From Schmidtea polychroa (Eukaryota): DNA of 64,000 nt. The position numbers and the translations under genes were made by a program. The stretch lies in contig CM097886.1 in assembly GCA_044892525.1 (NCBI GenBank), forward strand, positions 34,410,001 to 34,474,000, in the 5' to 3' direction. Below, piece by piece: positions 3,936 to 34,559 of the stretch (the first letter of the stretch is position 1; each line of letters opens with the position of its first letter). The notes under the pieces were generated by a model. The model did no database searches, was not told where the DNA came from, and was given only the letters and a program-made list of their open reading frames with translations.

Positions 3936-6900
3936 TGCTGGGGTAGTGCTCGATTGACCTCAACTCATTTACGCACCTGTCTAGGAGATGAGTGTCCATT
4001 CATTTACGCTAAGTGTGCTTACGTCAATCCGGAGCAAGACCCCGCACAACTTGTATTCCAACATAGCACCCGTGAATTACTCCACGTTGGAAATGTGCTA
4101 TGCCGGCGAGACACCAGTAAGCAGGTGAGCCCCTACCTTAGGACTACTCCTTACTGAGGCCTCGACTTCCTTTTTCTGACGGCCGATGGAAGGGCTTACG
4201 TCTGATCACTCCACCATTTCCTTCCCCACCTGACACCGAGTTGTATACAGATTGTCTAAGGCTTTTCGAACTAAAGTTTGCGCCTGGGTTGTAAAAACTA
4301 CTCTGCACCTTTATAATGGCTAATCAAACAAAACTAACAATAAGAAATGACGAAAATTCCTTTATTCTACTATCATAGTGCGTTATACAGTTAAAACTAC
4401 AGGACTAATATAAATCAAGGGAAGACGGTTTACGAGAACATATAAGTCAGAATCGTTCAATTTACTAAACATGATCGATGTAGTTGCATTGGATCGAGAT
4501 CTTTACTTTTCCCATTCTGCGTCGGCTAACAGCTCCTCCAGCTCGAAGAATTCGGAGGCATTCTCCTCCCAAGTTACACCAGCGGCGGAGATGATTCGCC
4601 CTGGGATCCCTACGGTTAAATCGATCGTTACAGGGGGATCGTTCGAAGTACTGGAGAGCTCGGCGGATAGTCCACTTTGTTTGGCGATTGCTCGTTCGCG
4701 CTGACGCTTTTTACGCTCAGCTCTGGACAACTGTCGACGCTTGGGTTTTGGAACAATCAGGGTGTTTGATAGGACGACAGAAGAAGATGCGGTCGATGGT
4801 AACCCTTTCTGGGCTCCAATGGGAGACACTACGGCTGGCCTGGGAGAGAGGTCGGCCTCTACGCATTCCCGGCAGGGCTTCTTGGCTGAAGATGACGAAT
4901 TTGAAGGAAGTTCATGATGGACGGGGAAGAGGTCGTCCGCTCCATTGATGGGTATACTCACTATCTTCCTAGTCGCTGCCGCTTGAACGTAGACCTTGTG
5001 TAGAGCCTCGGACTGTTCTTTGATAAGACTGCGTTGGGCCCTACTCTCGCTGATTAAGGCGTCGCGACAGTGCTCGCTTCGGTACAATTTCTTTTGTACC
5101 TCCTTCATTTGTACTGGACTAAACCACGTACCTTCCAGATGGTCGATCGCCTTCTTGTATCTACCGATCTGGGCCTGTAAATCCCTGATTATAGTATTTT
5201 TATCTGAGCAGGAGAAGCAGGGTTTGAGGGATGATCTCGAGTTGGGCAACATTTCTTCGGTAGCTAAAATGAAGACAGGATAATGTTGATTAAACGAAAA
5301 TTTACTACATTCACTAATCCATCAACGTGGCGGCATTCCTTATCAAGGGCCTGACCATCCCCCCATTACACCCACGGGCCAAGGACTTTACGAAGAAAGG
5401 GGACGGAAGAGTTAAAATGACTGTCAGCAAAATTCAGTTGGATCGATGTTACATCCGCAAATAACCGGTGTTTGGGCATTAGTAAATCTATCTCCCTTCC
5501 CTTTATTGCGACCACGATAATTATAGCGTCGAGTTAGGTAACTTAACAATACGAGAGTGTAGTCTACATGTGACTTCGTCATCATCTGGATAATTTGGAC
5601 AGATCAGATATGGAGGAGTAATAACTTGATTAAAGATTCGTACATCTAATCCTAATTACAATATTTAAGTTTGCTCTAATTCAGCATATTTGTGATTATA
5701 ACAAATTAGAAATCGAATGTACATTGCCCATCTGATTAGTTACACTATTAATACTCTCTACCAGTTTGATAACTATTCTGGTTATGTGAGACATCAAATG
5801 CGGACCGTCTGCTGTATGTATTATCAGTGACTGATGCGATATTCAGATTATTAATCGATGTTGGATTTACTATGTCCGGGTGATGGGAGTCGATTCTATC
5901 GTTACTGGTGATTAAATTGTGCATTCACCCTGACTGTGCAATCTACGTGAGTATTCTACCGGCTATCTCATATGTTAGCGTGAATTTATGCAGGTGTTTC
6001 TACTCGTAAGTGATTATCTAATCCTAATCATGATGTACGTGTAGTCAGATTGTGCTTGCTCGTTGTACGCATTCGTGCTCTATGTTAGTCACTGAACTTG
6101 AAATCTGTATTTCTGTTGGGATTTAATCATTTAGTGTTGATATAATCTACTGGCTAATTCCCATTGCACGTGGAATATGGAATTCTATATTATGTTGCAT
6201 TTCCCGCCTTCAGGTTCGGATATCTCACTCAGTGGATGTATTTTATCAATTAACTCAAAGAAACCTCATCTTGGTGACGTCCAACAAAGGTAATTTCCTG
6301 AAAATACTTGTCGGGTTTCTACTACCAATCATCCGGAATGGCATTATTTAATAAAAACTAAAAATCCTTTGTGGAATTTCATTTTTAATTAACCACGTCT
6401 TATGACTTTATTTTGTGCATTTAATAGGTTATGAGTCGGAGGTCTCTTACCGATTGGCTTTCAGGCTACGGTGATCAGAAATCTGGACAGAACTAACTAA
6501 TTTTTATAAGAAAATCAAATGTCCTTCGAGATGTTTTTGCATTAAATCAGGTGACTAGAAATTTTCAGTTATATGCCTACACCAATTTGTGACCTCAGAG
6601 TGAGTCTATCAATGTTCTAGTTGTTTCGTTTAAAACGGGAATTGAACGAATTTTTGGTAGCAAGACAATTTACCGCGAGATGTTAAAGCGTCGACTAATG
6701 CGAATTTACGATTTGGACTAATTCATAATGTCAAATGAACTTTTTAACGCATAGCGTTGAGGAAAGATAAGTTTTCTTAGTAGGAATTGCAGTCATCTCA
6801 GTCATTGTCTATCATGGCCACATTCATTGTTTAGAGTCTGAAACCGGTCTCACTTCACACCTGACTATTTGCCTATAATAATTTAAGTCCTTCAGCGACG

Positions 6901-7842
6901 GACCCGTGAGGAAGCCCCCACATTCCGGCCCACGTCAGCTGCGTGATTGAAGAAGTCTGTACCCACCGGCTGAGCTCCCGAAGGCTCCTCACACCATGGT
7001 ACAGGTTTCCTCAACTCCACGTTACTCAACCATAATTTTCATATAAATTCCATAAAATCGAAATCATCATGCATAGTTATCTATCATAAAAGGGTTTAAA
7101 TTTCATCACTAAAAATACTTAATTATTAATATATGAGACCAAATGGAGAGAACATTAAAATTTTATTAAAATTATGATAATAAACATTATTACTATTAAC
7201 CTCCATGAGAACATTTACTTAAATTCATAATAAGAATACATCCTTACTTTATTCTTTATCGATCTGTGATCTCGAAAGGCTGAGTCGAAAAGCTGAATTC
7301 GGTATTTGCACTGAGTTGAAAATCTAATTGTCCCTGATAGTCGCTTAGGTTGTACGTCGGTGATCGTCTGTAATGGTTGGGTGTTGATCTGTAATGGTGT
7401 TTGTTAAACAGTAAATTTTAAATTATGAGCTTACCTGTAATGGTGTTTGTTAAACAGTAATTATATTGAATTTGCTGTTTGCTTATATAGGAATTTTTTG
7501 TTTATGCGGACCAATCAAAATTGAGTACCGCTTTAACTTTTAAATTAATTTGTTTTTCTTATTTCTTTGGTTGTTTTTCCTTATTTTTCTTTATTTTAAT
7601 ATATTTTTTTTTGTTTCTTAAATTCCTCATTATTTGTTGCATTTTTCGTCATTTTATTCCTTATCTTATTACCTTATTTTAATTTTTCTATTTTTTATTT
7701 TTTGTTTTAATCTTAATATTTTACGTTATTGTTTTCTTTTGTCTCTTGATTTATTTATTTTAGCACTTTGTGGTCTTATTTTATTTGTTCGTGTCTTATC
7801 TGTCCTAAATTTGACGATTATGCTTTTCGACTCAGCCCAACA
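3936..7842 (-). repeat. 3' LTR (3,907 bp)
   Basis: Minus strand begins TGTTGGG and ends CCCCAGCA. Matches 29541-33447 except substitutions seen at 4284/29889 and 7442/33047. Confidence 0.96.
4503..5252 (-). CDS. LTR-encoded ORF, 249 aa (3' LTR copy), unknown function
   Basis: Open frame with CxxC (CFSC), coiled coil, second CxxC (CREC), basic NLS-like PKPKRR..RKKRQRER and acidic-aromatic C-terminus. Acceptor-like TTCATTTTAG 11 nt before the ATG; AATAAA at 4366-4361 followed by a GT-rich tract. Confidence 0.7.
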   Translation of the reverse strand: MLPNSRSSLKPCFSCSDKNTIIRDLQAQIGRYKKAIDHLEGTWFSPVQMKEVQKKLYRSEHCRDALISESRAQRSLIKEQSEALHKVYVQAAATRKIVSIPINGADDLFPVHHELPSNSSSSAKKPCRECVEADLSPRPAVVSPIGAQKGLPSTASSSVVLSNTLIVPKPKRRQLSRAERKKRQRERAIAKQSGLSAELSSTSNDPPVTIDLTVGIPGRIISAAGVTWEENASEFFELEELLADAEWEK

Positions 7843-8115
7843 AATCACTCGGGGACCCGATAAAATTGCGTCCCGCAATTACATACTTGAGCTATTCTTA
7901 CTTTCTCATAAAAAGATAAACACATTCATAAAAAGATAACATAGTGATTAACAAAATTATAAACATCAATAGAATTTTATTAATAAGATATAGGTCAAAT
8001 CAAGACCAAGCAGGCATCACTTATGGTGATGGTTTATATACACAGAAGTTCACACCAGTTAATGTTTTACAGTTCACACTAGATAATGTTTTAAATCAGT
8101 ACTGGCATTGTTTTA

Positions 8116-8760
8116 TTACTCTGCTGACTCTGACTGGGGTTGTTGGTACATTTTAGGCTCGATGTTGTAGTAGGCCGGACGACTGGTTGAGGGTTTGGGA
8201 GATTCTTGGTTGGTTAATCTGAGTGGACTTGTATTTTGAGTGATGTTGGAAAGTTCGACCGAATTTTTCTGGGTAGCCTTGGATTTCGGTTGTTGGCATT
8301 TTTTCTTGAATTCGAGGATTTCTAAGAAGGTTATTAGACATAATAGGCTTGTTTCGGCGATCACCACATATAGAAGGTAGTGGGTGTCGCCTTGTTCTGG
8401 GGATTTTTCGATTTTTTCAGGTTCGGAATTTTCCTGTCGTATTTGCACTTCTAGTTGATCTAGGTGATGGATTTGTTCTATCATCACCTTATTTATTTTT
8501 CTACACAGGAGGTTTCCTTGGCACATTACTCGGATATTGTCCATGTAGGTTCGGGTTGAACGGATGTTGTCTATGATTTTGCTCTTTACCATGGTATGGC
8601 ATCTCGGTTTAGGTGATTCGGATTGGGTTTTCGAGTTCTTTCTTCGGTGATCTCGGAGGCTATCTATTTGGGGGTTACTCTGTGGCTTGCTCATCAGATT
8701 GTTAGCCAGTATTATCAAGGTGATTGTCACTCCCCACCGCATTATACTGTTATACATCAA
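8116..8760 (-). CDS. Element accessory ORF, predicted type I membrane protein (about 208-214 aa)
   Basis: N-terminal hydrophobic MRWGVTITLIILANNLMS, internal TM-like YLLYVVIAETSLLCLITFLEIL, polar tail. AATAAA overlaps the stop. Confidence 0.65.
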   Translation of the reverse strand: MMYNSIMRWGVTITLIILANNLMSKPQSNPQIDSLRDHRRKNSKTQSESPKPRCHTMVKSKIIDNIRSTRTYMDNIRVMCQGNLLCRKINKVMIEQIHHLDQLEVQIRQENSEPEKIEKSPEQGDTHYLLYVVIAETSLLCLITFLEILEFKKKCQQPKSKATQKNSVELSNITQNTSPLRLTNQESPKPSTSRPAYYNIEPKMYQQPQSESAE

Positions 8761-8796
8761 ACATTTAATTTATTTACAATTGTCGACGTTCTTTTG

Positions 8797-9498
8797 TTAA
8801 TCGTCTTTCTTTTGGGGGTCGTTTTCGGTGATTCTCATTAGGATGGTCTCTGCCTTAATGACCCGATGTCTTAATTCCGGCATCATCTCTAATTGCCGAT
8901 CTTTTTCACGGGCTTCCCGTTTTAGGTGTCTTATCTCCTTTTTTAGTTTGCTTATTTCTTCTCGTTTCTTGTCAAGATTTCTTTTTAACTCGATTTTTAG
9001 GAAATCTTGTTCGTTCTCCTGTGGAGGGTTTCGTTGTTGTTGTTGTCTCTCAATTTCTTTGTATTTGCGAATCCATTTCTTCATTCCTTCACTTTCTTGT
9101 TGACTTTCTTGCAATTGTTTCTCTAGTTCCTCTATGGTTGCTTGCCGTTCTCGCGCCTCAGTCTTCCAATAATCGCTAATCACTTCGTCTGCCTTTCTAC
9201 TGGCCCTTTCTTGCCATAATTCTTCCGCAATCTTCTCCCAATTTCTTCCTCGTTTTCGTTGTTCTTGCAGCCATTCGTTTTCCCCTTCTGTTTCTCTTTT
9301 TACTTCCCCTAGCACTCTGCATTCTTTCTTTAGTATCTTTATTATTTATCGATCTTCTATGTATTTGTTTACCAGTCTCTCGTTTTCGCACTTTTCTTCT
9401 CGCAACTCTGCTTCTAGCGTTTGTGTTTCTGTTGTTTCTGTTACAATTTCTCCTTCTTCCTCGTCGCTCGTGATTTCTATCATTTCCTCGATTTTCAT
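8797..9498 (-). pseudogene. Element coiled-coil ORF interrupted by one in-frame TAA (9346-9348)
   Basis: ORFs 9346..9552 and 8797..9315 are in the same frame, separated only by TAA and 10 sense codons (IIKILKKECR). E/K/R/Q-rich throughout. Confidence 0.6.
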
Positions 9499-9673
9499 AT
9501 CTATAATATGTACAGTTAATGGTGCGCTATAGTGCGACTTATACGTATACATTTATATAAAATTTAATAGTTTGGGTTACAGTCCCTTGGATACTTTTAC
9601 AATACTTAAATTTTTTTTTTGTTTGTTTGGGATATACGTCCCGGTTTTTTGTTTTTTATCTTTTTATCCACCC

Positions 9674-10729
9674 TTATACGAAGGTTTCCTCCTGGCCTAC
9701 ATAACCTTCATCACTATCGACCGCGGGATGTAACTGTATCGCAATAGGGTCGTATGGTAGGTAATATTGGGGAATTTGAGCTCTCAACTCATTAATTTCG
9801 TCTCTTAGAGCTCGAGTGATGTTCAGCTCTTCGTCGAGCAGGTAGGTGAGGTACCTTGTCTCTTCGTCTTTCATCTCTATTTGTCTATCTAGGGCCTTGA
9901 TTTTCTCGTCGCCTTTCCATTTTTCAATTTCTATTTCCAAGTTTTTGATGTTTTCGGTGTACATTTTCCTTTCGTTTTCTAATTTTCTGTTTTTCCCAGC
10001 TAGGACCATGTTTCTTTGTTCCAGCGATCCTTGTAATCCATTAAGGTCTCTTTTCATCTCTTCTACCTGATTTACTAATTCCACAACCCGTCCTGCTTGT
10101 TGGGTTATCATCTCTTCCATTGCGGCATTCTCGTGCTCTCTTATGTCGCATTTTATTGCCAAATGTCGCTCAAACTCCATAGCCTTTGTCTGCCAGGTTT
10201 GACTTCGGGCGGCGACCTTTCTCAACCGTTTCAATTCTTCCTTTATTATTAAATTCTCCTCCCATTTACCTTGTTCGCTTTCATATCCGAGTCTCATGGG
10301 CATTTCTTTCATCTCTTTTTTCATTTCACTGTTTTGTCTTTTCCATTTTCTCGCTTCTGCCACTAAGTGCATCATTTTCCTTCCTTCTATTTGCTTTTCC
10401 GCTTCGCGCTTGGTGTTCTCATCGGTAAGTCTCTTTCTCGCTTCCTGCACTAGCTGCTTTAAGTAGTGGCTGTGCGCTTCTTGGCGGGTATTTTCTAGTG
10501 ACGCCCATTTTGATGCTCTTTTGCATGCTTCTGCTTCCGCTCTTAAGTTGTGTATTAACCATTGGTATTGACTATTCTCATCCTCTCTAGCTTCTTCGAT
10601 GTGATTTCGGGTGAGATTAGTTAGTTGGAACATTACTTTGTTCCATTTTTTGTTATGTTCTCGGGGAATTTGTGTCTTGTTGACATTGGTTGGGGCTATC
10701 GCAGTTTCGGTTATTTTCTCTTGTGTCAT
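9674..10729 (-). CDS. Element accessory ORF, 351-aa coiled-coil protein
   Basis: Long E/K/R/M-rich helical ORF with the same purine-rich strand bias as the polyprotein. TTTAG|AG immediately before the ATG. Confidence 0.75.
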   Translation of the reverse strand: MTQEKITETAIAPTNVNKTQIPREHNKKWNKVMFQLTNLTRNHIEEAREDENSQYQWLIHNLRAEAEACKRASKWASLENTRQEAHSHYLKQLVQEARKRLTDENTKREAEKQIEGRKMMHLVAEARKWKRQNSEMKKEMKEMPMRLGYESEQGKWEENLIIKEELKRLRKVAARSQTWQTKAMEFERHLAIKCDIREHENAAMEEMITQQAGRVVELVNQVEEMKRDLNGLQGSLEQRNMVLAGKNRKLENERKMYTENIKNLEIEIEKWKGDEKIKALDRQIEMKDEETRYLTYLLDEELNITRALRDEINELRAQIPQYYLPYDPIAIQLHPAVDSDEGYVGQEETFV

Positions 10730-10923: not shown

Positions 10924-12312
10924 TTACTCCGTTCTACCCTTTCCTTCCCTTCGTACTGTCATTTTTATATGTATTGTGTCATTTTTCGTCATCTCTTCCA
11001 CCTTTTGCTGCAAGATGAACGTAGGTGCCCCTGATGCTGCTCCTTCTTCCTCCATAGGTCGCCGGTAACACAGCTGGGTTCCCGTTGTTTTAAAGCTTTG
11101 TTCGTGGACGCTTTGGTCGTTCATCATTGTGATATCGATTTTTGCCTGGAATGGCCATTCTATTACCTCGTCATATTCCCCTTTACATAATAGGAAAAAT
11201 ATCGAAAAATGCGTATTCAATCCGGTTCCATCTCCGTTGGGATATATCCTCATTTTCATCTTGTACCCATTTTTCCAAGAATGGAATGCAGGACTTGTTA
11301 TCCTTGTCTCTTCTCCGGTTTTTGCTTTTCGTATTCTTTCTTTTACTCCCGTTATTTTCCATATGTAGGGTGCTGTTGGTATTACTTCATTTAGATTTAT
11401 TTCCCGTATTTTCTGATGTAGTTCCTTGGCCTGATTATTACTGATTTCCATTCGGTTCATTTGCATCTTTATGTTTGCTCGGGCTTCTTCGAACGCTTCC
11501 CTTTCTTCTAGTAGTTCTTTGACTAACACTTTCAACGATGCTATCTCTATCTCCATTTGTTTTACTTTCTCCTCGCTTTCTTGTAACGCAGTCGACCACA
11601 TTTCTGCGTGGGTTGAAGCATTTTCTACTAAATGATGTGGTAACTCCCCTCGGTGTAGTAGTTTCTGACAACCCCATTTACCTAGTACACATGTCATTCT
11701 TTTCTTTTCACATTCCCTTAGATGCTGTGCCACCTTTATTATTTCCCCTTGGTTACATCCGTTTGGGCATTCCCCACTGAACTCTGCACATACTCTCTCC
11801 TCTTGGATATTGTGATGTTTGAGGGTGAGATTTTTCCACGTATCTATTTCTCCACAATGTTCACATCTTTCCAATCTCTCTTCACACTGCCTTTGATGCT
11901 CTTTTTCTTCGCTTGCTCGAATGGTTTTATGGCACCTTTCACACTGGCCAATTCTGTACATACATTCTCCCATATGTTGCACTACTTTCCATATTATTCC
12001 TTTCCATTCGCATGGGGTATTTTTACATCCCAGATTGGTGTTTAACATGTCTTTCACTGCGGCTTTATCCTCGTTAGTGTCTTCTAAACTCGATATTAGT
12101 GTCTCTTTACACACCGGGCACCACTGTGGTCTATTCTTTATTGCTTCACTGATACATTCTTTACATACTCTGCATCCACATTGGGTTTGGTGAGGTTCCT
12201 TTAACAACTTTTCACAGATTCCGCACATAACATGTTTGTGTGTTCGGATCGTTGTAGATTTTCTGACTTGTTCGACAATCTCTCTGAACTCTTCTCTTTG
12301 TCGTTTATCCAT
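10924..12312 (-). CDS. TRAF-like protein (RING - TRAF zinc fingers - coiled coil - MATH), intronless, element-borne
   Basis: RING CGICEKLLKEPHQTQCGCRVCKEC..CPVC; C/H zinc fingers; MATH motifs YIWKI, SPAF, GYKMKMRIYPNGDG, HFSIFFLLCKGEYDEVIEWPF. Confidence 0.93.
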   Translation of the reverse strand: MDKRQREEFREIVEQVRKSTTIRTHKHVMCGICEKLLKEPHQTQCGCRVCKECISEAIKNRPQWCPVCKETLISSLEDTNEDKAAVKDMLNTNLGCKNTPCEWKGIIWKVVQHMGECMYRIGQCERCHKTIRASEEKEHQRQCEERLERCEHCGEIDTWKNLTLKHHNIQEERVCAEFSGECPNGCNQGEIIKVAQHLRECEKKRMTCVLGKWGCQKLLHRGELPHHLVENASTHAEMWSTALQESEEKVKQMEIEIASLKVLVKELLEEREAFEEARANIKMQMNRMEISNNQAKELHQKIREINLNEVIPTAPYIWKITGVKERIRKAKTGEETRITSPAFHSWKNGYKMKMRIYPNGDGTGLNTHFSIFFLLCKGEYDEVIEWPFQAKIDITMMNDQSVHEQSFKTTGTQLCYRRPMEEEGAASGAPTFILQQKVEEMTKNDTIHIKMTVRREGKGRTE

Positions 12313-12397
12313 TCTATAATTATATATACATATAGTTCTTATCGATACAGGTTCGATATTTTATTTACAATTATTTACATTTTAAGCTAGGTTTGGT

Positions 12398-12781
12398 TTA
12401 GGGTTCGGAAGAGTCGGCTTCGTGTCCGCTCTCCTCTCTATTCATTAGCCATTCCGACCAGTCTTCTATTTCCGTCTGTTCTGCTTCCTCCATCATTCTG
12501 TCTAGCTCGATTTCCTGTCTACGGCTATATTGGGTTATCCTCTCTATCTCTCTTTGCATTTGTTCGATTTTCAACCTCTGGTCTTCAATTATCTTCAAAT
12601 AACTAAATCCTCTATTCATACTCTCGATTAGGTTTCTGTGCATCGTCAATCCTTGTTCTTGCAAATTGGACACTAATTGTGCTAATACGGCACATTGTTG
12701 CTTCCATAATTCTTCAGTTACTGTATTGTGGTTCATTTCGTTATTTCCTTGATCCATTCTTAATTTATATACACTTTTCAA
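12398..12781 (-). CDS. Element accessory ORF, about 120-aa coiled-coil/acidic protein (likely ATG at 12757)
   Basis: Open frame MDQGNNEM..EQMQREIERITQ..; ORF-track start is a TTG. Confidence 0.6.
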   Translation of the reverse strand: MKSVYKLRMDQGNNEMNHNTVTEELWKQQCAVLAQLVSNLQEQGLTMHRNLIESMNRGFSYLKIIEDQRLKIEQMQREIERITQYSRRQEIELDRMMEEAEQTEIEDWSEWLMNREESGHEADSSEP

Positions 12782-25700: not shown

Positions 25701-26757
25701 GTCTCATCATTTGTTGCATCATCTGTTTCATCTGCGAGATTTCCTGCATAACGTTCATTTGTTTTCCTTCGCTAGGGTTACTTTGTCGTTGCGGATTCGC
25801 CATATAATTATTATTTCGCTGTGGTGGTCGTTGTTGTTGGCCCCTTTCTCGGCAATCTCTGGAGATGTGACCTGGCTGACCACAGTTAAAACAACCTCTC
25901 AATTGGCATACATTTTCGGTATGTCCACGCCGTCCGCAACAATTACAATTTGAATTTCTATAACAATCTCTGTCCCAGTGTCCTGGTTTACCGCATGTTC
26001 GGCACTGCTTGTTATCGTTCATATTTCGTCGATTACTAAAATTGTTCTCATTATTCAGGTTGTTACGATTACCATTATTCCCATTTGATCGTCCTTGTGG
26101 TGGTTTGAAAATTTGATGCGCTCCTGGTATAAATTGATTCATTTTTGGTTCCTGGTTGTTATTATCTCCATTATCCGTTTTTACTTTGGCTGTCGCTATC
26201 CTCCCATCCTCTTGCATGATGTTCATTTGTGCTGGGAGGTGGAGTTCGCACCTCGTAGCCCAATCTATGGCCTCCTCTAACGTTGTACACATCTGACAGC
26301 CTACAGATGCTCTTACTTCTTCTCGGCGTAATCCCTCTATGAAATAGCCGATCAAATTTTCTTCTGGCAATTTCCCATTCATTGCTTTCTTTGCCAATCT
26401 CCGCAATTCGCTGGCATATAACGTGATGGATTCATTTGCTCTTTGTTTCCTATTTGCTAGTTCGCCGAGTGCTTGATTTATTGGTTTGCTAGCTCCGAAA
26501 GTTTTCTTCAGGAATGTTTTGATATCGTCCCATTTATCTAATTTCGTATTTCTTTCTTTAGCCTCTAAATACACTTCTAATGCGCTATCGCACAAAAACA
26601 ACGGCATCCTTTTACTAACTGCTTCGGATGTCCATCCGCACACATCGATATAAACTTCGAAGTTGGTTATGAACGTTGCTAACTTGTTTGCATTTCCGTT
26701 GAACGGTTCTCCTCTGAACTTCTCTTTATACTCGTCGGTTTTTACGACATTCGTCAT
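13705..26757 (-). CDS. 4,350-aa Gag-(Ubl)3-Bcl2-like-Env-PR-RT-RH-INT-ankyrin polyprotein
   Basis: Single uninterrupted frame. CCHC knuckles 25852-26004; protease DTG at 19527-19519; RT YIDD at about 18309-18298; RNase H TDASG / TDHQPL; integrase HHCC plus MDVVGP / TDQGTNF / TERFN; ankyrin TPLH/TPLM motifs. Confidence 0.96.
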   Translation of the reverse strand: MTNVVKTDEYKEKFRGEPFNGNANKLATFITNFEVYIDVCGWTSEAVSKRMPLFLCDSALEVYLEAKERNTKLDKWDDIKTFLKKTFGASKPINQALGELANRKQRANESITLYASELRRLAKKAMNGKLPEENLIGYFIEGLRREEVRASVGCQMCTTLEEAIDWATRCELHLPAQMNIMQEDGRIATAKVKTDNGDNNNQEPKMNQFIPGAHQIFKPPQGRSNGNNGNRNNLNNENNFSNRRNMNDNKQCRTCGKPGHWDRDCYRNSNCNCCGRRGHTENVCQLRGCFNCGQPGHISRDCRERGQQQRPPQRNNNYMANPQRQSNPSEGKQMNVMQEISQMKQMMQQMMRPRQEPAPQQTQNIRMMRSTENLNNYEVHQHVQEWQRLQAEEERIKQERNQQRQEQPLRINMMKLVKDMKSQYCYNYGKNPRVVPRTEPEKVKETTTEMKTENSTTILKGNQRIQKIFWKKIKDKIEKEHNKAKTETEDENNKSKEQTSQLNHQMLQELESEETTIFERKKLKRVPRIRNLQINMMKRTKDVASSDEEEDYVSSLGGEILQLNEISEPPKGEIKEEEGESEITSESEDEDIEIKLRKEREEAIKQVAEILPVVVRNQEFIDIIPFRRFVQKVMKLERNEKDLIPNEEKSIIKKYMEKMKQADTTRYVIKIGTSRGLERMWIKSTVTDELFDWIREHLGSSRKKEYLYQYQGEQIKPDMHLVDALIWPGETQILKLHKEKQPANLYDWAKDAKAEYDFNIKLKLEQIKQCTLRRNLDKLIKQIQEQVEDNWDLLITRRAPAMYELMSRLRDTEMLRMSDWRTINLIHKYGRLKETQPQRLEITIWLPNEEKRRIKMSNQSTVDDLVSKINQEITEKVRSESGDGMVDDVVMMYDKIILRAEDDTSLSEMGMWDNHQIIRIVPMDEFRTRDVTYQKEIRDRMKTLYQKSTEIIEIHQQWLKEKELQGKITKLSTRSCRRTPWERVWNTENKEWEIRKGIFVETDIGETESESEEEEEEPPEYEEEAREQTSDDEGETDVTSESENEARHIHAMRKKEREYADMDGEEATEAREREEKERYKQLGDILAMGAKNQKRQVVALANIILKTSENIHNLRGTAKAIEEYRQYNELYPEQLEQIIRKWRNQEWAQDTQERYHIRIKYPDKSIKELEVHPTTKIRELKKKLAYETPFHLQLFGKSLDDNADVGITPMRLEETNVLTMAETLGKPLKRKSKINKPTKGSLSTPSPNKAPSKSNETEEVEEIILEDSDDEPGERSPLLVRWPTGAELWTNNQPSTSYQQPTKLNIKEIIDNTTETETDEQFQKQREPTKVTSEGQTDKIIDEWNEWLRNNDSSLPRTDNERNPNYENTREAGTMMEKRAKGRPKKQGEKSEFKTKEQLKQEQGQVRLEKLDKIVWDLKEAQPTIERGEKWIRELIKDMLIITNPQLRRLWQRKVASTEARQLWHIVSGTIPKLIKEKTKTTKTDWDETKRVIEQLTTNANDDEHHLVVITYLMYNLMGLAARKIPNKQFANHVEMTVSVIENTIEPHIIRAGGWKRLIQAPRKNEQERSMQVRLKKLLNELEWELPMKDPASRKASINSLMMTMMIWMLCTSGATGFTIYDCDNMIMRDKYSLRDIEECRQASPNKLDIVRTKVTYHVYQESDFIRTQARECVVSKKVLAYYCGQYSYSTLILPGLDKEIVSIQREDCKELFRTGALKMHNGVTIHGQTGMIKTESVYVSGKVKSSDGSCNGGTYTIRGEVISGVVVIESYTVELKEYEAQFDANNYQMKTNPACRATENVCRTGVSTIIYEANTQKCRLQLLKSALFNEVKGEIYENENDEDGNDRVRMRNGKPMPPSPREKRLSTQKTPTALITDDPDLGMRFIKEKETTKCDSIVYKTNYAGIYMSRQIIDRAVGKIATEDVKLYLYANNKMDFLFHRGQTTLQKVYYDLIQNDCSLNKEILKTKLAIAITHPDNTMPSLPLPDGHFGRMVGEVMYTYQCTKTYARMPEKSILPEKRCANELEIRYKGQNRFVQPVTRIMNPVGFYPNLFNCSNAYGPLYERPDGKWMMLPGKTISEEPKKFGLIELATELDFKPIDVSNGGMYSPEDLETARLNVLFPARRESILSNMVTITGGTNYQSGPNYELLLSPDHFQQATSNMMKAMWGRFLVFGQMMAGILGIILIIQIVRVILTQMLACFDIYKREKKVNWKMIVGFLPFLAKTMVLHGHSKDIHRIKRLIKILTKIKGTDEEVGRRFRKVMYDEATRRQLKKNKPKFLDRFRSQSSNSDSDDDDNGNDKCLYPNRNPNEKPVETAPYWEKEKTNTWIANGSYISPDIVGPQAALTMTQNMYPQLPSQPGMHYMPTRRTKSVDQADDVRTIAAMSLPGGPAVTVMIQINGKETNAMIDTGANVSVIAINQIPSKHWKDIESTTIHIIACSKETVDVVGRWWTTLRYQDNEIETYLAVIPKLSVPCIIGTDLMPELLKEVVIDLTTMCLKDKTGRICKMNAIIRCPEKIVVPAKSQMICQIKVDTGMEGEVIFEPSKSFEKRRELPLAREIITINQEGVIPLNITNFEEEDKIIYENEKLGRLTPLMDIELPKVTNEMIKDDELWTIDSMLLTNDEKKKLHRLLVEYKDIFAISDLDLGTCDVTLHAIPLIDETPIALRPYKLAEMQKEIAEAEVQKMLDAKVIEPSCSPWQFPVVMVKKKDGTQRFCIDYRKLNAVTKRDTYPLPDINEMLLMLQGTAYFTSLDLKSGYWQIKVKDEDKEKTAFTLGRDLYQFRKMPFGLTNAPASFQRCMNFVTHGIKQCMVYIDDLLIYSATFEQHLEDIRNVFIRLRQWKLKLKPSKCDWAKEKVTFLGHIVSAKGKEPDPRNIEKIKTCPAPKTVTQVQEFLGLCGYYRKFIKNYAGIAKPIQELVKKDISFIWEKEQQQAFETLRDKLIEAPILVHPDFKKPFLLATDASGYAAGAILGQLDDEGKERVIGYYSRTFKKHEKNYSVTEREALAIIQAIKHFRYLLWGHEICITTDHQPLVWLGQHKEASSRLMRWAMQLQEYSPFIKFKAGRANANADCMSRFIFPDLVDSEMQRICLIVAEDLDFCQLRKDQQEDAELKQIIDYVKTGKTDVYAKDQKLKEHMDKHRHRYIIEKDWLLIMDGEKRLMCIPENRRKELLTQYHDGRLGGHMSSKKTLARMKQKYFWPTLTEDVTEWVKNCLTCATRKNTGSKWKAPLTPMPVPIEPMTMISMDVVGPLPESDRGNVYILVITDFLTKFPEAFAMPDQKAKTIAKILVEEICCRYGTPKQILTDQGTNFMSEIMSEVTNYFKIAKLRTSPYHPQTNGMTERFNGTLIQMLSNYVDRHQRDWDEYINLCLMAYRMSIHASTKMSPFKLMYGRECNMPMDLEYQPPISQYMEIDDYVTKFKERMQEIWETAGLNIKFYQESYKDLHDRKKNVKQHTFQTGDWVMIETPELIPGTTRKLQRNGKGPYEILFVGETNVRVKLINNPFTRPIYVNVARCKPIPKTATSHPEGRTLTTRSQTYRMNMMQQLAEPITGRLGIQPSEAEKIVREVKIKLPGWAKDRLDFEILGGLLTMIENYANRERTHPLLRVVKSQWPILFTITDHYGDTPLHKLMKVGNNEQILETIEAFHDCKRSTEQENTQGYTPLMIAANRGKTKDIITALLDTGSKITTQDRERKNALHHAIEGKSTEAFTSLMELLSYEDNQEVGNMYGGLLTATKEKLTTITGILITWRNPIKNDYMINVNEAFTRGENTLMREAMKGHHLFEIPNQLLERGIKFTNHKDEQLAKKRIDTFEKSIFQFTNQVRNKYWETVSVLYMMDTMNNLHENYLDIIQILTAEERINNPNGKKTKIRYGKSREPKSTVTNNVIETKSMSIDQEAIICKAKEVFFEEMLELSDEIILSKIIKAVHTYARDQTTGLDIEKIKTFLPRAFAMTTKDSRTPLQQAILSAKENRAITIMRILREMGEETNTKNEQGETAMMYAAITKIHPKTLHILHQSGSRLDEKSNEGNSTLDWATIQPNLEMIRFICKNATKEEIENMCKNTSQFQWNTVRKNLEAMKLLVTWRIPQSNKYAININEFYENGENAMVKNTLTKGGTPKIILIVLNREDLKFTQNKSEQQRIGKHRRIQLRELVKEWNRKRHAATGRKEFEFEAKLAKNRVLTAYRRLLDDINVEDDILNDSGGDKHDDNDGKGRKEDKGKREPEEDKPENKELDTKREGNSPGTKTKEEEKPNNGKQRVCLPFTNKEIETNMILMIIMLTMIELVTAHGGTRTIKETKEAENQDGKEDELKQEKKKQAQEQLGFKGRMGLKGKVHTRKMHV
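14580..15880 (-). other. Ankyrin-repeat domains (two blocks) at the polyprotein C-terminus
   Basis: GDTPLHKLM, GYTPLMIAA, KNALHHAI; SRTPLQQAI, GETAMMYAA, GNSTLDWAT. Confidence 0.88.
16190..17240 (-). other. Integrase domain (HHCC, DDE core, GPY/F-like)
   Basis: YHDGRLGGH..CLTC; SMDVVGPL; ILTDQGTNF; PQTNGMTERFN; GKGPYEI. Confidence 0.95.
17500..18800 (-). other. Reverse transcriptase and RNase H domains
   Basis: SPWQFPVVMVKKKDG..FCIDYRKLN; LDLKSGYWQI; MPFGLTNAPASFQR; YIDD; LATDASGYAAGAILGQ; EREALAI. Confidence 0.97.
19230..19580 (-). other. Aspartic protease domain
   Basis: NAMIDTGANVSVI and a downstream IIGTDL motif. Confidence 0.93.
20060..21960 (-). other. Envelope glycoprotein domain (chuvirus/Jingchuvirales-type) with signal peptide and TM anchor
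   Basis: Signal-like LMMTMMIWMLCTSGATG then FTIYDC..YSLRDIEEC; YCGQYS; CNGGTY; NNKMDFL; NDCSLNKEIL; GEVMYTYQC; CANELEI..FVQPVTRI; TM FLVFGQMMAGILGIILIIQIVRVIL. Confidence 0.82.
22078..22521 (-). other. Bcl-2-like domain (BH2-like motif)
   Basis: IEPHIIRAGGWKRL aligns by eye to Bcl-xL BH2 LEPWIQENGGWDTF, with Bcl-2-like helix spacing upstream. BH1 NWGR is not conserved. Confidence 0.55.
23098..24762 (-). other. Three ubiquitin-like domains (about 24547-24762, 23992-24243, 23098-23298)
   Basis: Beta-grasp pattern, clearest in RYHIRIKYPDKSIKELEVHPTTKIRELKKKL..LQLFGKSLDDN. Confidence 0.6.
25852..26757 (-). other. Gag capsid-like region and three CCHC zinc knuckles
   Basis: FNG..FITNFE..W..; QRANESITLYASELRRLA; CRTCGKPGHWDRDC, CNCCGRRGHTENVC, CFNCGQPGHISRDC. 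Confidence 0.92.
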
Positions 26758-28071: not shown

Positions 28072-28257
28072 TTACGACTGGCTGGCACTATTCAACAGCT
28101 CAATCTTCTTCCTTCTGACCGGTTGGACTATTCAACAACTCGATCTTACGACTGGCTGGCACTATTCAACAGCTCAATCTTCTTCCTTCTGACCGGTTGG
28201 ACTATTCAACAACTCGATCTTACGACTGGCTGGCACTATTCAACAGCTCAATCTTCT
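28072..28257. repeat. Tandem repeat, 74-bp unit x about 2.5, in the element 5' internal region
   Basis: TTACGACTGGCTGGCAC.. recurs at 28072, 28146 and 28220; each unit holds two related CTATTCAACA-based subunits. Confidence 0.95.
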
Positions 28258-28812
28258 AATATTCCCCACTCTGCATGCTTCTACTTCTCTTTTCCTCTTT
28301 TACCCTGAATTATTATTTTCTCTGTCTCTACTTTTAATTTGTCGACTTGATCTTTACCGCTTGAGAGTGTTTCCCCTTTCCCCCCTTGCTCAAAACGCAC
28401 GACGATCGCGATGATCCATTTCCACATTGGCATGGTGATCAGTCATGTCGTAAAAACTTCTCATCATATGCGATGGTACCCCGCCCTACGCTCCTCACTT
28501 GGGTTGATCGGTTACCCCCTCCCAATGGGTTGCTTTGATGATAGGACGTACCGCCCGAAGGTGGCTCATTTTGTACTCTTATATCCTATATTGGGACTAA
28601 TTCCACGTTAAATTTATTTTTCTCCATTTGATCTCACAAAAAAAAAATATAATTAACCGAGATAAAATATTCAATTCACAACACAACTTTTATTAATCAT
28701 GAAACTAAGACTAAACATTAATGCTACTTTACACTTAAAATTACATACATTCATCTTTAACCGTCATTATTGATCCGATACACATACACATTAATACATC
28801 TTTTTAGTCCTT

Positions 28813-29298
28813 TTAATCACCGTAATAAACCATATGGGTTTCTTTTATCTCATGTTTGCATATGGTACATCGTTTCAGGTCTTGTGCGCATTCTTCACAA
28901 TGACTGAGGTGTCCACAAGGCAAGAACAGTACGCGAATAGGACGAAGTTTACAAGCAAGGCAAGTTCGTAATAGGGTCAGTTTTTCGTGTATTTTTCGCT
29001 CGATTGTATCTGATATGGTACTTAATGGATCTTTTATACGTTGATAATCAAGATTTAATGTTGGGTGGTTCAATCTCTCTTGATACCATTGATACACGGT
29101 TTCAGGGTTTATCTTCCCCTCTGGGTGACTTAGTCCTGCGGCTAATAACATGTGGTTGGGGACGACTGGTGTTTGCCCGATTGCTTGGAGTAGTATGATG
29201 TTAATTCTTTCTCTCTTTTGTGTCAGCGTTTTAAGGGAGTCATCCTCGATGTTTACGAAGTTGCTTAGTTGTTGTATCTGGTCCACGAATTCCGTCAT
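28813..29298 (-). CDS. 161-aa protein with C-terminal IAP/MDM2-type RING finger, element-borne, upstream of gag
   Basis: CLACKLRPIRVLFLPCGHLSHCEECAQDLKRCTICKHEI at the C-terminus; no BIR seen. TTTTTTTTAG|ACATG start context; AATAAA plus GT-rich tract near 28690. Confidence 0.85.
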   Translation of the reverse strand: MTEFVDQIQQLSNFVNIEDDSLKTLTQKRERINIILLQAIGQTPVVPNHMLLAAGLSHPEGKINPETVYQWYQERLNHPTLNLDYQRIKDPLSTISDTIERKIHEKLTLLRTCLACKLRPIRVLFLPCGHLSHCEECAQDLKRCTICKHEIKETHMVYYGD

Positions 29299-30107
29299 GT
29301 CTAAAAAAAATGTTTTAGTCTTACATAACTAATTAGTGGTTGTTTCATCAAACCCTTTCCTTTTAAATCGTTATAATTTATTTTATTTTTATCTTATTTC
29401 CCCCTTATTAAATTTACTTTAGTTATACATTTAATTTTATCATAATTTCATAATAAGACTCGATAAGCATTAGACAATTTGCGCTCGTCAATCCATTGAC
29501 ATCGATCCTCTCGGTGAGTTCACATTGCCCCCAAAAATCATGCTGGGGTAGTGCTCGATTGACCTCAACTCATTTACGCACCTGTCTAGGAGATGAGTGT
29601 CCATTCATTTACGCTAAGTGTGCTTACGTCAATCCGGAGCAAGACCCCGCACAACTTGTATTCCAACATAGCACCCGTGAATTACTCCACGTTGGAAATG
29701 TGCTATGCCGGCGAGACACCAGTAAGCAGGTGAGCCCCTACCTTAGGACTACTCCTTACTGAGGCCTCGACTTCCTTTTTCTGACGGCCGATGGAAGGGC
29801 TTACGTCTGATCACTCCACCATTTCCTTCCCCACCTGACACCGAGTTGTATACAGATTGTCTAAGGCTTTTCGAACTAAAGTTTGCGCTTGGGTTGTAAA
29901 AACTACTCTGCACCTTTATAATGGCTAATCAAACAAAACTAACAATAAGAAATGACGAAAATTCCTTTATTCTACTATCATAGTGCGTTATACAGTTAAA
30001 ACTACAGGACTAATATAAATCAAGGGAAGACGGTTTACGAGAACATATAAGTCAGAATCGTTCAATTTACTAAACATGATCGATGTAGTTGCATTGGATC
30101 GAGATCT

Positions 30108-30857
30108 TTACTTTTCCCATTCTGCGTCGGCTAACAGCTCCTCCAGCTCGAAGAATTCGGAGGCATTCTCCTCCCAAGTTACACCAGCGGCGGAGATGAT
30201 TCGCCCTGGGATCCCTACGGTTAAATCGATCGTTACAGGGGGATCGTTCGAAGTACTGGAGAGCTCGGCGGATAGTCCACTTTGTTTGGCGATTGCTCGT
30301 TCGCGCTGACGCTTTTTACGCTCAGCTCTGGACAACTGTCGACGCTTGGGTTTTGGAACAATCAGGGTGTTTGATAGGACGACAGAAGAAGATGCGGTCG
30401 ATGGTAACCCTTTCTGGGCTCCAATGGGAGACACTACGGCTGGCCTGGGAGAGAGGTCGGCCTCTACGCATTCCCGGCAGGGCTTCTTGGCTGAAGATGA
30501 CGAATTTGAAGGAAGTTCATGATGGACGGGGAAGAGGTCGTCCGCTCCATTGATGGGTATACTCACTATCTTCCTAGTCGCTGCCGCTTGAACGTAGACC
30601 TTGTGTAGAGCCTCGGACTGTTCTTTGATAAGACTGCGTTGGGCCCTACTCTCGCTGATTAAGGCGTCGCGACAGTGCTCGCTTCGGTACAATTTCTTTT
30701 GTACCTCCTTCATTTGTACTGGACTAAACCACGTACCTTCCAGATGGTCGATCGCCTTCTTGTATCTACCGATCTGGGCCTGTAAATCCCTGATTATAGT
30801 ATTTTTATCTGAGCAGGAGAAGCAGGGTTTGAGGGATGATCTCGAGTTGGGCAACAT
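30108..30857 (-). CDS. LTR-encoded ORF, 249 aa (5' LTR copy)
   Basis: Translation identical to 4503..5252. Confidence 0.7.
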   Translation of the reverse strand: MLPNSRSSLKPCFSCSDKNTIIRDLQAQIGRYKKAIDHLEGTWFSPVQMKEVQKKLYRSEHCRDALISESRAQRSLIKEQSEALHKVYVQAAATRKIVSIPINGADDLFPVHHELPSNSSSSAKKPCRECVEADLSPRPAVVSPIGAQKGLPSTASSSVVLSNTLIVPKPKRRQLSRAERKKRQRERAIAKQSGLSAELSSTSNDPPVTIDLTVGIPGRIISAAGVTWEENASEFFELEELLADAEWEK

Positions 30858-33034
30858 TTCTTCGGTAGCTAAAATGAAGACAGGATAATGTTGATTAAAC
30901 GAAAATTTACTACATTCACTAATCCATCAACGTGGCGGCATTCCTTATCAAGGGCCTGACCATCCCCCCATTACACCCACGGGCCAAGGACTTTACGAAG
31001 AAAGGGGACGGAAGAGTTAAAATGACTGTCAGCAAAATTCAGTTGGATCGATGTTACATCCGCAAATAACCGGTGTTTGGGCATTAGTAAATCTATCTCC
31101 CTTCCCTTTATTGCGACCACGATAATTATAGCGTCGAGTTAGGTAACTTAACAATACGAGAGTGTAGTCTACATGTGACTTCGTCATCATCTGGATAATT
31201 TGGACAGATCAGATATGGAGGAGTAATAACTTGATTAAAGATTCGTACATCTAATCCTAATTACAATATTTAAGTTTGCTCTAATTCAGCATATTTGTGA
31301 TTATAACAAATTAGAAATCGAATGTACATTGCCCATCTGATTAGTTACACTATTAATACTCTCTACCAGTTTGATAACTATTCTGGTTATGTGAGACATC
31401 AAATGCGGACCGTCTGCTGTATGTATTATCAGTGACTGATGCGATATTCAGATTATTAATCGATGTTGGATTTACTATGTCCGGGTGATGGGAGTCGATT
31501 CTATCGTTACTGGTGATTAAATTGTGCATTCACCCTGACTGTGCAATCTACGTGAGTATTCTACCGGCTATCTCATATGTTAGCGTGAATTTATGCAGGT
31601 GTTTCTACTCGTAAGTGATTATCTAATCCTAATCATGATGTACGTGTAGTCAGATTGTGCTTGCTCGTTGTACGCATTCGTGCTCTATGTTAGTCACTGA
31701 ACTTGAAATCTGTATTTCTGTTGGGATTTAATCATTTAGTGTTGATATAATCTACTGGCTAATTCCCATTGCACGTGGAATATGGAATTCTATATTATGT
31801 TGCATTTCCCGCCTTCAGGTTCGGATATCTCACTCAGTGGATGTATTTTATCAATTAACTCAAAGAAACCTCATCTTGGTGACGTCCAACAAAGGTAATT
31901 TCCTGAAAATACTTGTCGGGTTTCTACTACCAATCATCCGGAATGGCATTATTTAATAAAAACTAAAAATCCTTTGTGGAATTTCATTTTTAATTAACCA
32001 CGTCTTATGACTTTATTTTGTGCATTTAATAGGTTATGAGTCGGAGGTCTCTTACCGATTGGCTTTCAGGCTACGGTGATCAGAAATCTGGACAGAACTA
32101 ACTAATTTTTATAAGAAAATCAAATGTCCTTCGAGATGTTTTTGCATTAAATCAGGTGACTAGAAATTTTCAGTTATATGCCTACACCAATTTGTGACCT
32201 CAGAGTGAGTCTATCAATGTTCTAGTTGTTTCGTTTAAAACGGGAATTGAACGAATTTTTGGTAGCAAGACAATTTACCGCGAGATGTTAAAGCGTCGAC
32301 TAATGCGAATTTACGATTTGGACTAATTCATAATGTCAAATGAACTTTTTAACGCATAGCGTTGAGGAAAGATAAGTTTTCTTAGTAGGAATTGCAGTCA
32401 TCTCAGTCATTGTCTATCATGGCCACATTCATTGTTTAGAGTCTGAAACCGGTCTCACTTCACACCTGACTATTTGCCTATAATAATTTAAGTCCTTCAG
32501 CGACGGACCCGTGAGGAAGCCCCCACATTCCGGCCCACGTCAGCTGCGTGATTGAAGAAGTCTGTACCCACCGGCTGAGCTCCCGAAGGCTCCTCACACC
32601 ATGGTACAGGTTTCCTCAACTCCACGTTACTCAACCATAATTTTCATATAAATTCCATAAAATCGAAATCATCATGCATAGTTATCTATCATAAAAGGGT
32701 TTAAATTTCATCACTAAAAATACTTAATTATTAATATATGAGACCAAATGGAGAGAACATTAAAATTTTATTAAAATTATGATAATAAACATTATTACTA
32801 TTAACCTCCATGAGAACATTTACTTAAATTCATAATAAGAATACATCCTTACTTTATTCTTTATCGATCTGTGATCTCGAAAGGCTGAGTCGAAAAGCTG
32901 AATTCGGTATTTGCACTGAGTTGAAAATCTAATTGTCCCTGATAGTCGCTTAGGTTGTACGTCGGTGATCGTCTGTAATGGTTGGGTGTTGATCTGTAAT
33001 GGTGTTTGTTAAACAGTAAATTTTAAATTATGAG

Positions 33035-33120
33035 CTTACCTGTAATAGTGTTTGTTAAACAGTAATTATATTGAATTTGCTGTTTGCTTATATAGGAATT
33101 TTTTGTTTATGCGGACCAAT
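33035..33120 (-). promoter_or_regulatory. Candidate LTR promoter: CCAAT (33116-33120, plus strand), TATATAA (33094-33088), start near 33063, donor AG|GTAAG at 33039
   Basis: Motif order and spacing (TATA about 30 nt before the putative start); same motifs at 7430-7515 in the 3' LTR. Confidence 0.5.
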
Positions 33121-34559
33121 CAAAATTGAGTACCGCTTTAACTTTTAAATTAATTTGTTTTTCTTATTTCTTTGGTTGTTTTTCCTTATTTTTCTTTATT
33201 TTAATATATTTTTTTTTGTTTCTTAAATTCCTCATTATTTGTTGCATTTTTCGTCATTTTATTCCTTATCTTATTACCTTATTTTAATTTTTCTATTTTT
33301 TATTTTTTGTTTTAATCTTAATATTTTACGTTATTGTTTTCTTTTGTCTCTTGATTTATTTATTTTAGCACTTTGTGGTCTTATTTTATTTGTTCGTGTC
33401 TTATCTGTCCTAAATTTGACGATTATGCTTTTCGACTCAGCCCAACACCTTCTTATTCGAGTATCCTTACAACATCACATAGTCATCCACTTAGAATCCA
33501 TGATCCTTATCTTTCCTGTCAGGATATGTCTTCAAGGATTCTTGATTATATTTGATACTCAATCCTGATATTGACCACACTTCTTACATTATTTCCTTCT
33601 TTTCGAATAACTAGTTATATTCTTCAAGATATTGTTTCGCTTTAGAATAAAGGCTTTTAGATTCACTGAAATTTTGCTATCTTTCAAATACATAAGGTAA
33701 ATGGGAATTTTTCATGGTGTTGAGTGAACAGAGTTTCGATAAGCGAACAGACTAGATGCACATTCGAGTCTGTTGAAACTAAGTTCACGTATGAAGCTAA
33801 TATTTGCTAAGTTCCCATTGAACCTTTCGGTCAAATCATCAGTCTAGTGTTGTATGGTGACGTATTTAATTTCAATAATGTTTCACAAGAGATTCATAAT
33901 AAAATAGTTTTCTATGTCTATTAATATCTTGGATGATACCGAAATACGATTTGTTCCACTAAAATTTTGGCTATTGTGTCTTCTTTGTGATTTGGAATTG
34001 GTAAAGCTTCCGGTCATTTGATCAGATAATCTCGAAAGAAAACCTTCCTGGTAGGGTTCTTTACCCGTACGCTGTATTACCACGTGTCTTTTCTTTTCAG
34101 TATACAATATTGATGTAATAGAGTTGTAATCTTAAAACTCTTCAATAATTTAGATGCTTCATTTGTGTATCTTAATTTCTATTGTAATGACTTATGATCT
34201 GCCCACTAATTTTTCTAGGAGAGCTACATTCACATCCAAAATGTGTATGCGATCTACTTTTTTAATACTTACATAATATTTACCTACAATGCAATAAATT
34301 CATCACAAAAAAAAAAGCTTAAGAAAATTTTTCACTTTGTTACACCAACCAAAATTAAATTAAACTAAATAAACAAAATTAAATTAAACTAAATAACATT
34401 TTGGAAATGGTGAAATCAAAATTAAAAAATGTTATTTAGTATTACCATAGAAATGGAACACAGAACATGAAAATTGGCAAAAAATTTAAGCATAAAACAG
34501 AAATTTTATATAAAATCTAAATTTATATAAAAAATATTTTTTTTATGAAGATCTACTAA

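Follow-up and report, generated by a model that had tools for sequence, protein, structure and literature searches.

A complete giant Ty3/gypsy retroelement, probably of the Burro type, with a class III envelope glycoprotein in frame between Gag and Pol

To our knowledge, Burro elements are the largest long terminal repeat (LTR) retroelements. Here, a probable member of this group was analyzed in a 64,000-nucleotide stretch of contig CM097886.1 (positions 34,410,001 to 34,474,000; hereafter, the window). The Burro/GYPSM1 elements of Schmidtea mediterranea exceed 30 kb, with internal regions of up to 25 kb (Arkhipova & Yushenova 2019, PMC6431247). According to the same study, their first open reading frame (ORF1) starts with Gag and encodes 4,873 amino acids (aa) in S. 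mediterranea Burro-1 and 5,140 aa in Dugesia (Girardia) tigrina, with three and two CCHC knuckles, respectively. The motifs reported are RING, SMC-like, MATH_TRAF_C, BIR, ankyrin, Ubi2/SUMO-like, and BCL2-like, and HHpred placed a dUTPase-like region between the protease (PR) and the reverse transcriptase (RT). An accessory module may sit in ORF1 in one element and in a separate ORF in another, as is the case for MATH_TRAF_C. The env gene, which matches arthropod and fish mononegavirus glycoproteins, was presented as the "first case" of an env in frame between gag and pol, more precisely between BCL2 and PR (PMC6431247). A 2026 survey reported gB-type Env proteins and GAG-ENV-POL elements, with multiple young intact GAG-ENV-POL copies, in Platyhelminthes, Nematoda, and Bryozoa (PMC13524379). 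As cited in that survey, GAG-ENV-POL errantiviruses with a herpes simplex virus (HSV)/gB-type ENV also appear in Sacco et al. 2022, and mosquito BEL/Pao and arthropod gypsy elements have captured chuvirus-like glycoproteins (Dezordi et al. 2020).

The element in the window is very probably a single, complete, and recently integrated giant Ty3/gypsy element of the Burro type (Metaviridae, errantivirus-like), residing in a dugesiid-planarian-like genome. It is 29,512 bp long (3936..33447) and was delimited by an LTR pair, a target site duplication (TSD), and coding on one strand. The sense strand is the minus strand of the window, on which all features described below lie unless stated otherwise. 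Comparison of the window with itself yielded one long repeat pair, namely the LTRs. Since the long ORFs are all on the minus strand, the right-hand repeat (29541..33447) is the 5′ LTR, and the left-hand repeat (3936..7842) is the 3′ LTR. Each LTR is 3,907 bp long and has TG...CA termini with a 6/7 terminal inverted repeat. By self-BLAST, the two copies are 99.95% identical; there are no gaps, and the two mismatches are both transitions, neither of them inside the ORF that the LTR encodes. The tetranucleotide CCTT borders the element on both sides (3932..3935 and 33448..33451, unstranded), a 4-bp match whose probability by chance in DNA of ~25% GC is ~0.002. The internal region between the LTRs measures 21,698 bp. 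Its sense strand is uniformly and strongly A-rich over 8–28 kb (AT skew −0.25 to −0.44), and this bias ends at the LTRs, in line with a single transcription unit. No N run lies inside the element, and none of its genes is broken.

Repeats of 3.9 kb that are nearly identical pose difficulties for assembly, and the element's accessory genes (TRAF, RING, and ankyrin) resemble host genes. Both points would favor an artefact or a composite, in which the LTR was duplicated during assembly, or in which unrelated host genes are enclosed by two solo LTRs or by nested elements. Such an origin is nevertheless extremely improbable. The matching 4-bp TSD points to one integration event, and the LTRs show two real differences, whereas none would be expected had the assembly been collapsed or duplicated. 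Moreover, the ORFs are all on one strand and share one compositional signature that ends exactly at the LTRs, no N runs interrupt the element, and the integrase and the ankyrin repeats share one reading frame. An assembly artefact was rejected on the basis of the TSD and the two LTR differences. The near-identical LTRs, the 4-bp TSD, the structural intactness, and the recent insertion that had been proposed from a first inspection of the sequence (hereafter, the original prediction) are therefore all borne out. From the LTR divergence (K = 0.0005; 2 differences/3,907 bp) and generic substitution rates between 1e-9 and 1e-8 per site per year, which are not planarian-specific, we infer an insertion age of roughly 25,000 to 250,000 years, a range that gene conversion between the LTRs would bias downward. 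The sequence is compatible with the element being active, which the original prediction had held possible. A scan against Rfam gave no matches, and a bacterial promoter/terminator scan of the LTR, which is not applicable to a eukaryote, scored no better than shuffled sequences.

ORF1 (13705..26757; 13,053 nt) encodes a 4,350-aa Gag-linker-Env-Pol-ankyrin polyprotein without internal stops or frameshifts, in agreement with the uninterrupted 13-kb polyprotein of the original prediction. It begins with a Gag capsid-like domain (Retrotrans_gag, aa 52–145, 26323..26604; Pfam E 1e-9), followed by three CCHC zinc knuckles (aa 252–302, 25852..26004), which were identified by Pfam zf-CCHC and a motif count. 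The Pol domains, all recognized by Pfam, are the aspartic protease (aa 2397–2488, 19294..19569) with its DTGA motif, the reverse transcriptase (aa 2710–2868, 18154..18630) with YIDD, the RNase H (RH; aa 2931–3060, 17578..17967), and the integrase (IN; aa 3168–3357, 16687..17256). The latter consists of an H2C2 zinc domain and an rve core, and a motif count confirmed the presence of HHCC. The order PR-RT-RH-IN with RT_RNaseH and Integrase_H2C2 (Pfam E 1e-10 to 6e-39) is the Ty3/gypsy arrangement, as the original prediction had it; a retrovirus proper was ruled out because the Pol domains are gypsy-type. Two blocks of ankyrin repeats (aa ~3618–4066, 14560..15906) follow the integrase in the same frame, with a Pfam Ank_2 E value of 1e-19 on the piece and matches to ankyrin structures in the PDB. 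A hydrophobic segment lies near the C-terminus (aa 4277–4298, 13864..13929).

Between Gag and Env, an unassigned, charged, Cys-poor linker of ~1,200 aa (aa 303–1500, 22258..25851) contains weak ubiquitin-like/beta-grasp hints near aa 834–879 and 1156–1191. Sub-threshold RA_2/ubiquitin/UBX-like Pfam matches were found in the linker (E 0.007–0.4), and a PDB sequence search with aa 320–1500 gave no match. A weak Bcl-2-like match (aa 1507–1555, 22093..22239) scored E 0.02 and 15.8 bits against a curated Pfam cut-off of 31.4. An alignment-free AlphaFold2 (AF2) model of this region is helical, with a predicted local distance difference test (pLDDT) score of 46. Its best TM-score was obtained for Bcl-xL, at a non-significant E value of 0.6, and a PDB sequence search with the region gave no match.

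The layout of this element closely follows that of S. mediterranea Burro/GYPSM1. Both are ~30 kb long and have a giant ORF1, a Gag with three CCHC knuckles, an in-frame env followed by PR-RT-RH-IN and ankyrin repeats, MATH/TRAF and RING modules, an Env related to mononegavirus glycoproteins, and AT-rich host DNA. For the ubiquitin-like and BCL2-like motifs that precede env in Burro/GYPSM1, the present element gave the weak, sub-threshold matches described above, and its BIR, SMC, and dUTPase-like regions had no match here with the tools used. The Burro-like element of D. tigrina also resembles the present one in having MATH/TRAF in an accessory ORF and Gag-Env-Pol in a single frame (PMC6431247). 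However, it has two CCHC knuckles, a midasin-like region in its 5,140-aa ORF1, and an upstream TRAF ORF, whereas the present element has three knuckles, no midasin-like match, and a downstream TRAF ORF. Plant Ogre elements share very long LTRs and a large total size, but their size comes mostly from the LTRs, they lack env and the TRAF/RING/ankyrin modules, and their host is a plant (PMC6431247). Since the layout matches the published Burro/GYPSM1 description, the element is of a known kind rather than a new one. Indeed, its architecture is already published, and it is at most a further Burro member or sub-family. The suggestion in the original prediction that the domain set may be undescribed is thus not upheld. 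That prediction had also named Burro in noting that LTR elements this large are rare; the giant size stands, but Burro was cited as a mere comparison of size, although it is the architecture that matches.

Several observations weigh against the assignment to Burro. Membership rests on architecture, as compared with the published descriptions. ORF1 is shorter here (4,350 aa) than in S. mediterranea Burro-1 (4,873 aa) or D. tigrina (5,140 aa), and the TRAF ORF lies downstream of pol, whereas MATH/TRAF has been placed in ORF1 or in an upstream ORF (PMC6431247). The shorter ORF1 and the downstream TRAF could reflect a different Burro sub-family. In the present element, Pfam detected no MATH inside ORF1. 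No BIR was detected in any ORF of the element by Pfam hmmscan, and no dUTPase was matched between PR and RT (aa 2480–2720) at E values up to 5, although hmmscan is less sensitive than the HHpred search used in the published work. The Bcl-2-like match is sub-threshold, though it occupies the position expected from Burro, upstream of env. Finally, the LTR borders are not classical. The sequence before the 3′ LTR (7843–7890) contains no classical polypurine run. At the 5′ LTR (29500–29540, minus strand), the first TGG sits 7 nt downstream of the LTR, and the candidate primer-binding site is non-classical; a tRNA scan of the window found no tRNA gene with which this site could be compared.

In the collections searched, the best matches were at 33–48% identity for Pol, ~40% for Env, and 36% for TRAF. 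Word-based protein searches with the whole of ORF1, the Env piece, and the TRAF ORF gave pol-level or distant matches and no close copy, and a metagenome scan with PR-RT-IN found no relative above 48% identity. That no element protein has a close relative in these collections would suit a separate, undescribed lineage, possibly from a non-dugesiid host, which came to resemble Burro by convergent capture of similar host modules. The undetected BIR and dUTPase point the same way, as does the fact that the length of ORF1 and the position of TRAF depart from those in both published Burro architectures. Nevertheless, we regard this as improbable. About ten points of order and content agree with Burro, including the otherwise unique in-frame env and the three CCHC knuckles. 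Accessory modules are known to shift between ORF1 and separate ORFs (PMC6431247). In addition, the proteins of planarian genomes are apparently missing from the searched collections, and a lack of close matches is therefore expected. Assignment to the Burro type is thus preferred.

The envelope gene anticipated in the original prediction is present inside ORF1. Env (aa 1600–2240, 20038..21960) lies in frame between Gag and PR and contains a domain of the Monjiviricetes_fusion family of class III (gB-fold) fusion glycoproteins (PF24664, E 5e-70, aa ~1620–2207). A Met-rich, hydrophobic, signal-peptide-like segment (aa 1602–1618, 21904..21954) directly precedes the ectodomain, and a transmembrane (TM) anchor is located at aa 2171–2205 (20143..20247). 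A PDB sequence search with the Env piece gave no match. An AF2 model of Env, computed from a 65-sequence alignment of natural relatives, has a mean pLDDT of 84.9 and a 48-residue central helix. In Foldseek searches of the PDB, the model matched many gB structures with a probability of 1.00, the best being herpesvirus gB (E 3e-14). Among predicted viral structures, chu-like virus glycoproteins were matched at E 2e-38, and glycoproteins of chu-related, chu-like, xinmo-, and qin-related invertebrate negative-strand RNA viruses at E 1e-38 to 1e-30. On the predicted structure, Env is a class III (gB-fold) fusogen, nearest to the glycoproteins of chu-like/mononegaviral invertebrate RNA viruses. A class I F-type Env was ruled out, because the fold search returned class III. 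The 65-sequence alignment has 10 invariant columns, 6 of which are Cys, and a further 8 Cys columns reach a conservation of 90% or more. A dibasic REKR site is located in the sole long, disordered, low-confidence loop of the ectodomain.

The errantiviruses of the 2026 survey likewise combine a Ty3/gypsy Pol with a class III gB-fold Env between gag and pol. However, the search on which that survey was based handled GAG, ENV, and POL as separate ORFs and allowed gaps between ENV and POL, whereas all three are in one frame here. The present element is also several times larger, and neither a Bcl-2 module nor Burro is mentioned in the survey (PMC13524379). The elements of Dezordi et al. 2020, as far as they are described there, have an Env of the same structural class and of similar source (Jingchuvirales/Monjiviricetes), but they belong to another superfamily or host, carry Env as a separate ORF, and are not giant.

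An exhaustive HMMER search with Env retrieved 1,064 relatives. The best of them, which come from metagenome assemblies and one NCBI assembly, show ~40% identity by HMMER (26–39% by BLASTP) and are embedded in long retroelement ORFs, with the domain order Env-PR-RT-RH-IN or Gag-Env-PR(-RT-RH-IN). Many of the remaining relatives are free-standing proteins of ~650 aa with 20–27% identity. Four relatives from metagenome assemblies (P0017, P0020, P0022, and P0029, at loci L001–L004) share the single-ORF Gag-Env-Pol/Env-Pol organization and the same embedded position of Env, with a signal-like segment, a TM anchor, an in-frame Pol, and homologous Gag and Pol. The 1,200-aa linker, ankyrin tail, and TRAF/RING genes of the present element are absent from these relatives, and their ORFs are 2,300–3,200 aa long in comparison to 4,350 aa here. 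No homologues of the accessory ORFs were found in the related loci, and no LTR pairs were found on the relatives' contigs. In all 11 close relatives that were checked, a hydrophobic segment immediately precedes the mature Env N-terminus and a TM segment follows it; most of these relatives are embedded in longer polyprotein ORFs, with up to 2,346 Pol residues in frame after Env. In P0017, the closest Env-Pol relative (ENA ERZ25039515 contig_60956), the ORF after pol (L001, 9547–11622) encodes a 691-aa protein with an RNase_T (3′-5′ exonuclease) domain; the accessory gene of this related element is thus a different one.

All sequence parts of an autonomous LTR element are present and unbroken, and from these an ordinary LTR cycle can be inferred. 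The element would be transcribed from the 5′ LTR, reverse transcribed in Gag particles, and inserted by IN, thereby producing the 4-bp duplication. As for Env, the internal hydrophobic segment may act as a signal sequence. The Gag-linker part would remain cytosolic and be freed by signal peptidase, while the Env ectodomain would enter the lumen of the endoplasmic reticulum (ER), where the dibasic site in its loop could be cleaved by a furin-type protease. Transfer would then be stopped by the TM anchor, such that PR-RT-RH-IN-Ank would stay cytosolic and membrane-tethered until PR cleaves. Comparable signal/anchor layouts are used by the polyproteins of some positive-strand RNA viruses, but we know of no retroelement for which such an internal-signal/stop-transfer strategy of Env expression has been shown. 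With moderate confidence, we propose that the polyprotein itself brings Env to the ER by means of this internal signal and stop-transfer anchor, because all 11 relatives keep the hydrophobic and TM segments with Pol in frame after them, and because no strong pyrimidine tract that could mark a splice acceptor occurs on the sense strand of the internal region.

The same sequence would also fit an env sub-genomic mRNA, which weighs against threading of the polyprotein. In that case, Env would be made from a spliced or internally initiated message starting at the Met cluster before the signal-like segment. Such messages are the norm in retroviruses and in Drosophila errantiviruses; here, Met codons are clustered immediately before the hydrophobic segment, and 10 of the 11 close relatives have a Met within 45 residues upstream. 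On the other hand, Env has no stop of its own, and the message would thus read on into PR-RT-IN. The lack of a strong pyrimidine tract also speaks against splicing inside the element, and conservation of the in-frame fusion across relatives that are ~25–40% identical suggests that the fusion itself is used. A sub-genomic message is therefore a substantial possibility, though the less likely one, and delivery from the polyprotein is favored.

In addition to ORF1, the sense strand carries seven internal ORFs (161, 264, 127, 462, 351, 172, and 214 aa), one upstream of gag and six downstream of pol, as well as a 249-aa ORF in each LTR, so the count of about nine extra ORFs given in the original prediction was roughly right. 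These accessory and LTR ORFs are far longer than expected by chance. In 300 first-order Markov simulations of the same regions, the maximum open frames were 155, 115, 97, 90, and 80 codons for the 3′ region, where the observed sense frames are 478, 368, 261, 217, and 182 codons, and 181 codons for the LTR, where the observed frame is 272 codons. The host-like TRAF and cIAP-type RING genes among them agree with the viral-style gene content that had been predicted.

The 462-aa ORF (10924..12312) encodes a full-length TRAF protein consisting of a RING, TRAF zinc fingers, a coiled coil, and a MATH/TRAF-C domain (Pfam MATH E 2e-26, plus RING). In the PDB, its residues 23–159 match the RING-zinc finger region of TRAF6/5 (E 1e-13), and residues 245–453 match the coiled coil and TRAF-C of TRAF1/2/3 (E 4e-28). 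The 161-aa leader ORF (28813..29298) ends in a C-terminal cIAP/XIAP-type RING without BIR (zf-C3HC4_3, Pfam E 4e-12), which matches the BIRC3/BIRC2 RING in the PDB (E 4e-11). A tandem repeat of 2.5 fully identical (100%) copies of 74 bp (28072..28257, unstranded) lies within the 2.8-kb leader between this RING ORF and gag; published Burro maps likewise draw tandem repeats.

The remaining accessory ORFs have no family or PDB match, and no paralogy was found between the accessory ORFs and ORF1. Two of them are predicted to contain one TM segment each, namely the 264-aa ORF (12918..13712), together with a basic/acidic N-terminal part, and the 214-aa ORF (8116..8760), together with an N-terminal hydrophobic segment. 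Three are rich in E, K, R, or Q and coiled-coil-like in appearance: the E/Q-rich 127-aa ORF (12398..12781; 119 aa from the first ATG), the E/K/R-rich 351-aa ORF (9674..10729), and the 172-aa ORF, counted from a GTG (8797..9315; 95 aa from the first ATG). The LTR ORF is present as identical copies in the 5′ LTR (30108..30857) and the 3′ LTR (4503..5252). It is Ser/Ala-rich with a basic patch, its GC content of 52% is far above that of the rest of the element, and it too matches no family or PDB entry. At the end of ORF1, its stop and the ATG of the 264-aa ORF overlap by 8 nt (13705–13712, minus strand), and the frame of the 264-aa ORF is open for 29 codons further upstream. This compact junction could permit coupled translation or frameshifting.

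The TRAF, IAP-type RING, and ankyrin modules, and possibly the Bcl-2-like and ubiquitin-like ones, may be signalling parts captured from a host. Plausibly, such captured modules would disturb ubiquitin, NF-kB, and cell-death signalling in cells where they are expressed, as has already been proposed for Burro. Only tentatively can the element be taken as representing a Burro sub-family that still lacks a detailed description and is distinguished by a free-standing full-length TRAF, a leader IAP-type RING, and a protein-coding LTR, in a clade whose members would all insert a class III fusogen into the ER from a retroelement polyprotein; this broader picture is rather unlikely to hold in full.

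The flanks of the element have a GC content of 22–29% and contain animal genes. To the right of the element lie a complete-looking NUDIX ORF of the Nudt16-like (U8 snoRNA-decapping) type (39859..40383), an aquaporin/MIP exon (48111..48683), and three exons of an OATP-family transporter (53070..53417, 56427..56858, and 60031..60624), all on the minus strand. These Nudt16-like, aquaporin, and OATP genes indicate that the host is an animal. Schmidtea genomes are more than 70% A/T and rich in Burro elements of over 30 kb (PMC11410931), and AT-rich flanks with animal genes fit a planarian host. In the flank of ~26% GC, an uninterrupted ORF of 490 codons starting with ATG lies on the plus strand (36701–38173) and is very unlikely to have arisen by chance. 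Pfam and PDB sequence searches with this ORF gave no match, and the protein collection contains no identical sequence. The ORF may represent a host gene with a single exon or belong to a further mobile element. Exact-sequence look-ups of up to ten window proteins likewise returned nothing. Six N runs occur in the window, all of them in the flanks (1160–1301, 1328–1613, 47873–48015, 53703–53850, 54403–54611, and 59174–59345).

Burro elements make up a sizeable share of planarian genomes, show tissue-specific expression, and are under PIWI/piRNA control (PMC8532177). BURRO1, in particular, is transcribed in a tissue-specific manner and repressed by SMEDWI-2 (PMC8532177). The present element does not reveal a new kind of retroelement, since the architecture has been published. 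As an unbroken copy with 99.95% identical LTRs, it provides a clean reference for annotating the Burro family. It also helps to ask how a retroelement handles a 26-kb RNA, and how Env can arise from the middle of a Gag-Pol polyprotein. Finally, it raises the question of how captured TRAF, IAP-RING, ankyrin, and possibly Bcl-2 modules affect cell-death and immune signalling in an animal with a high capacity for regeneration.

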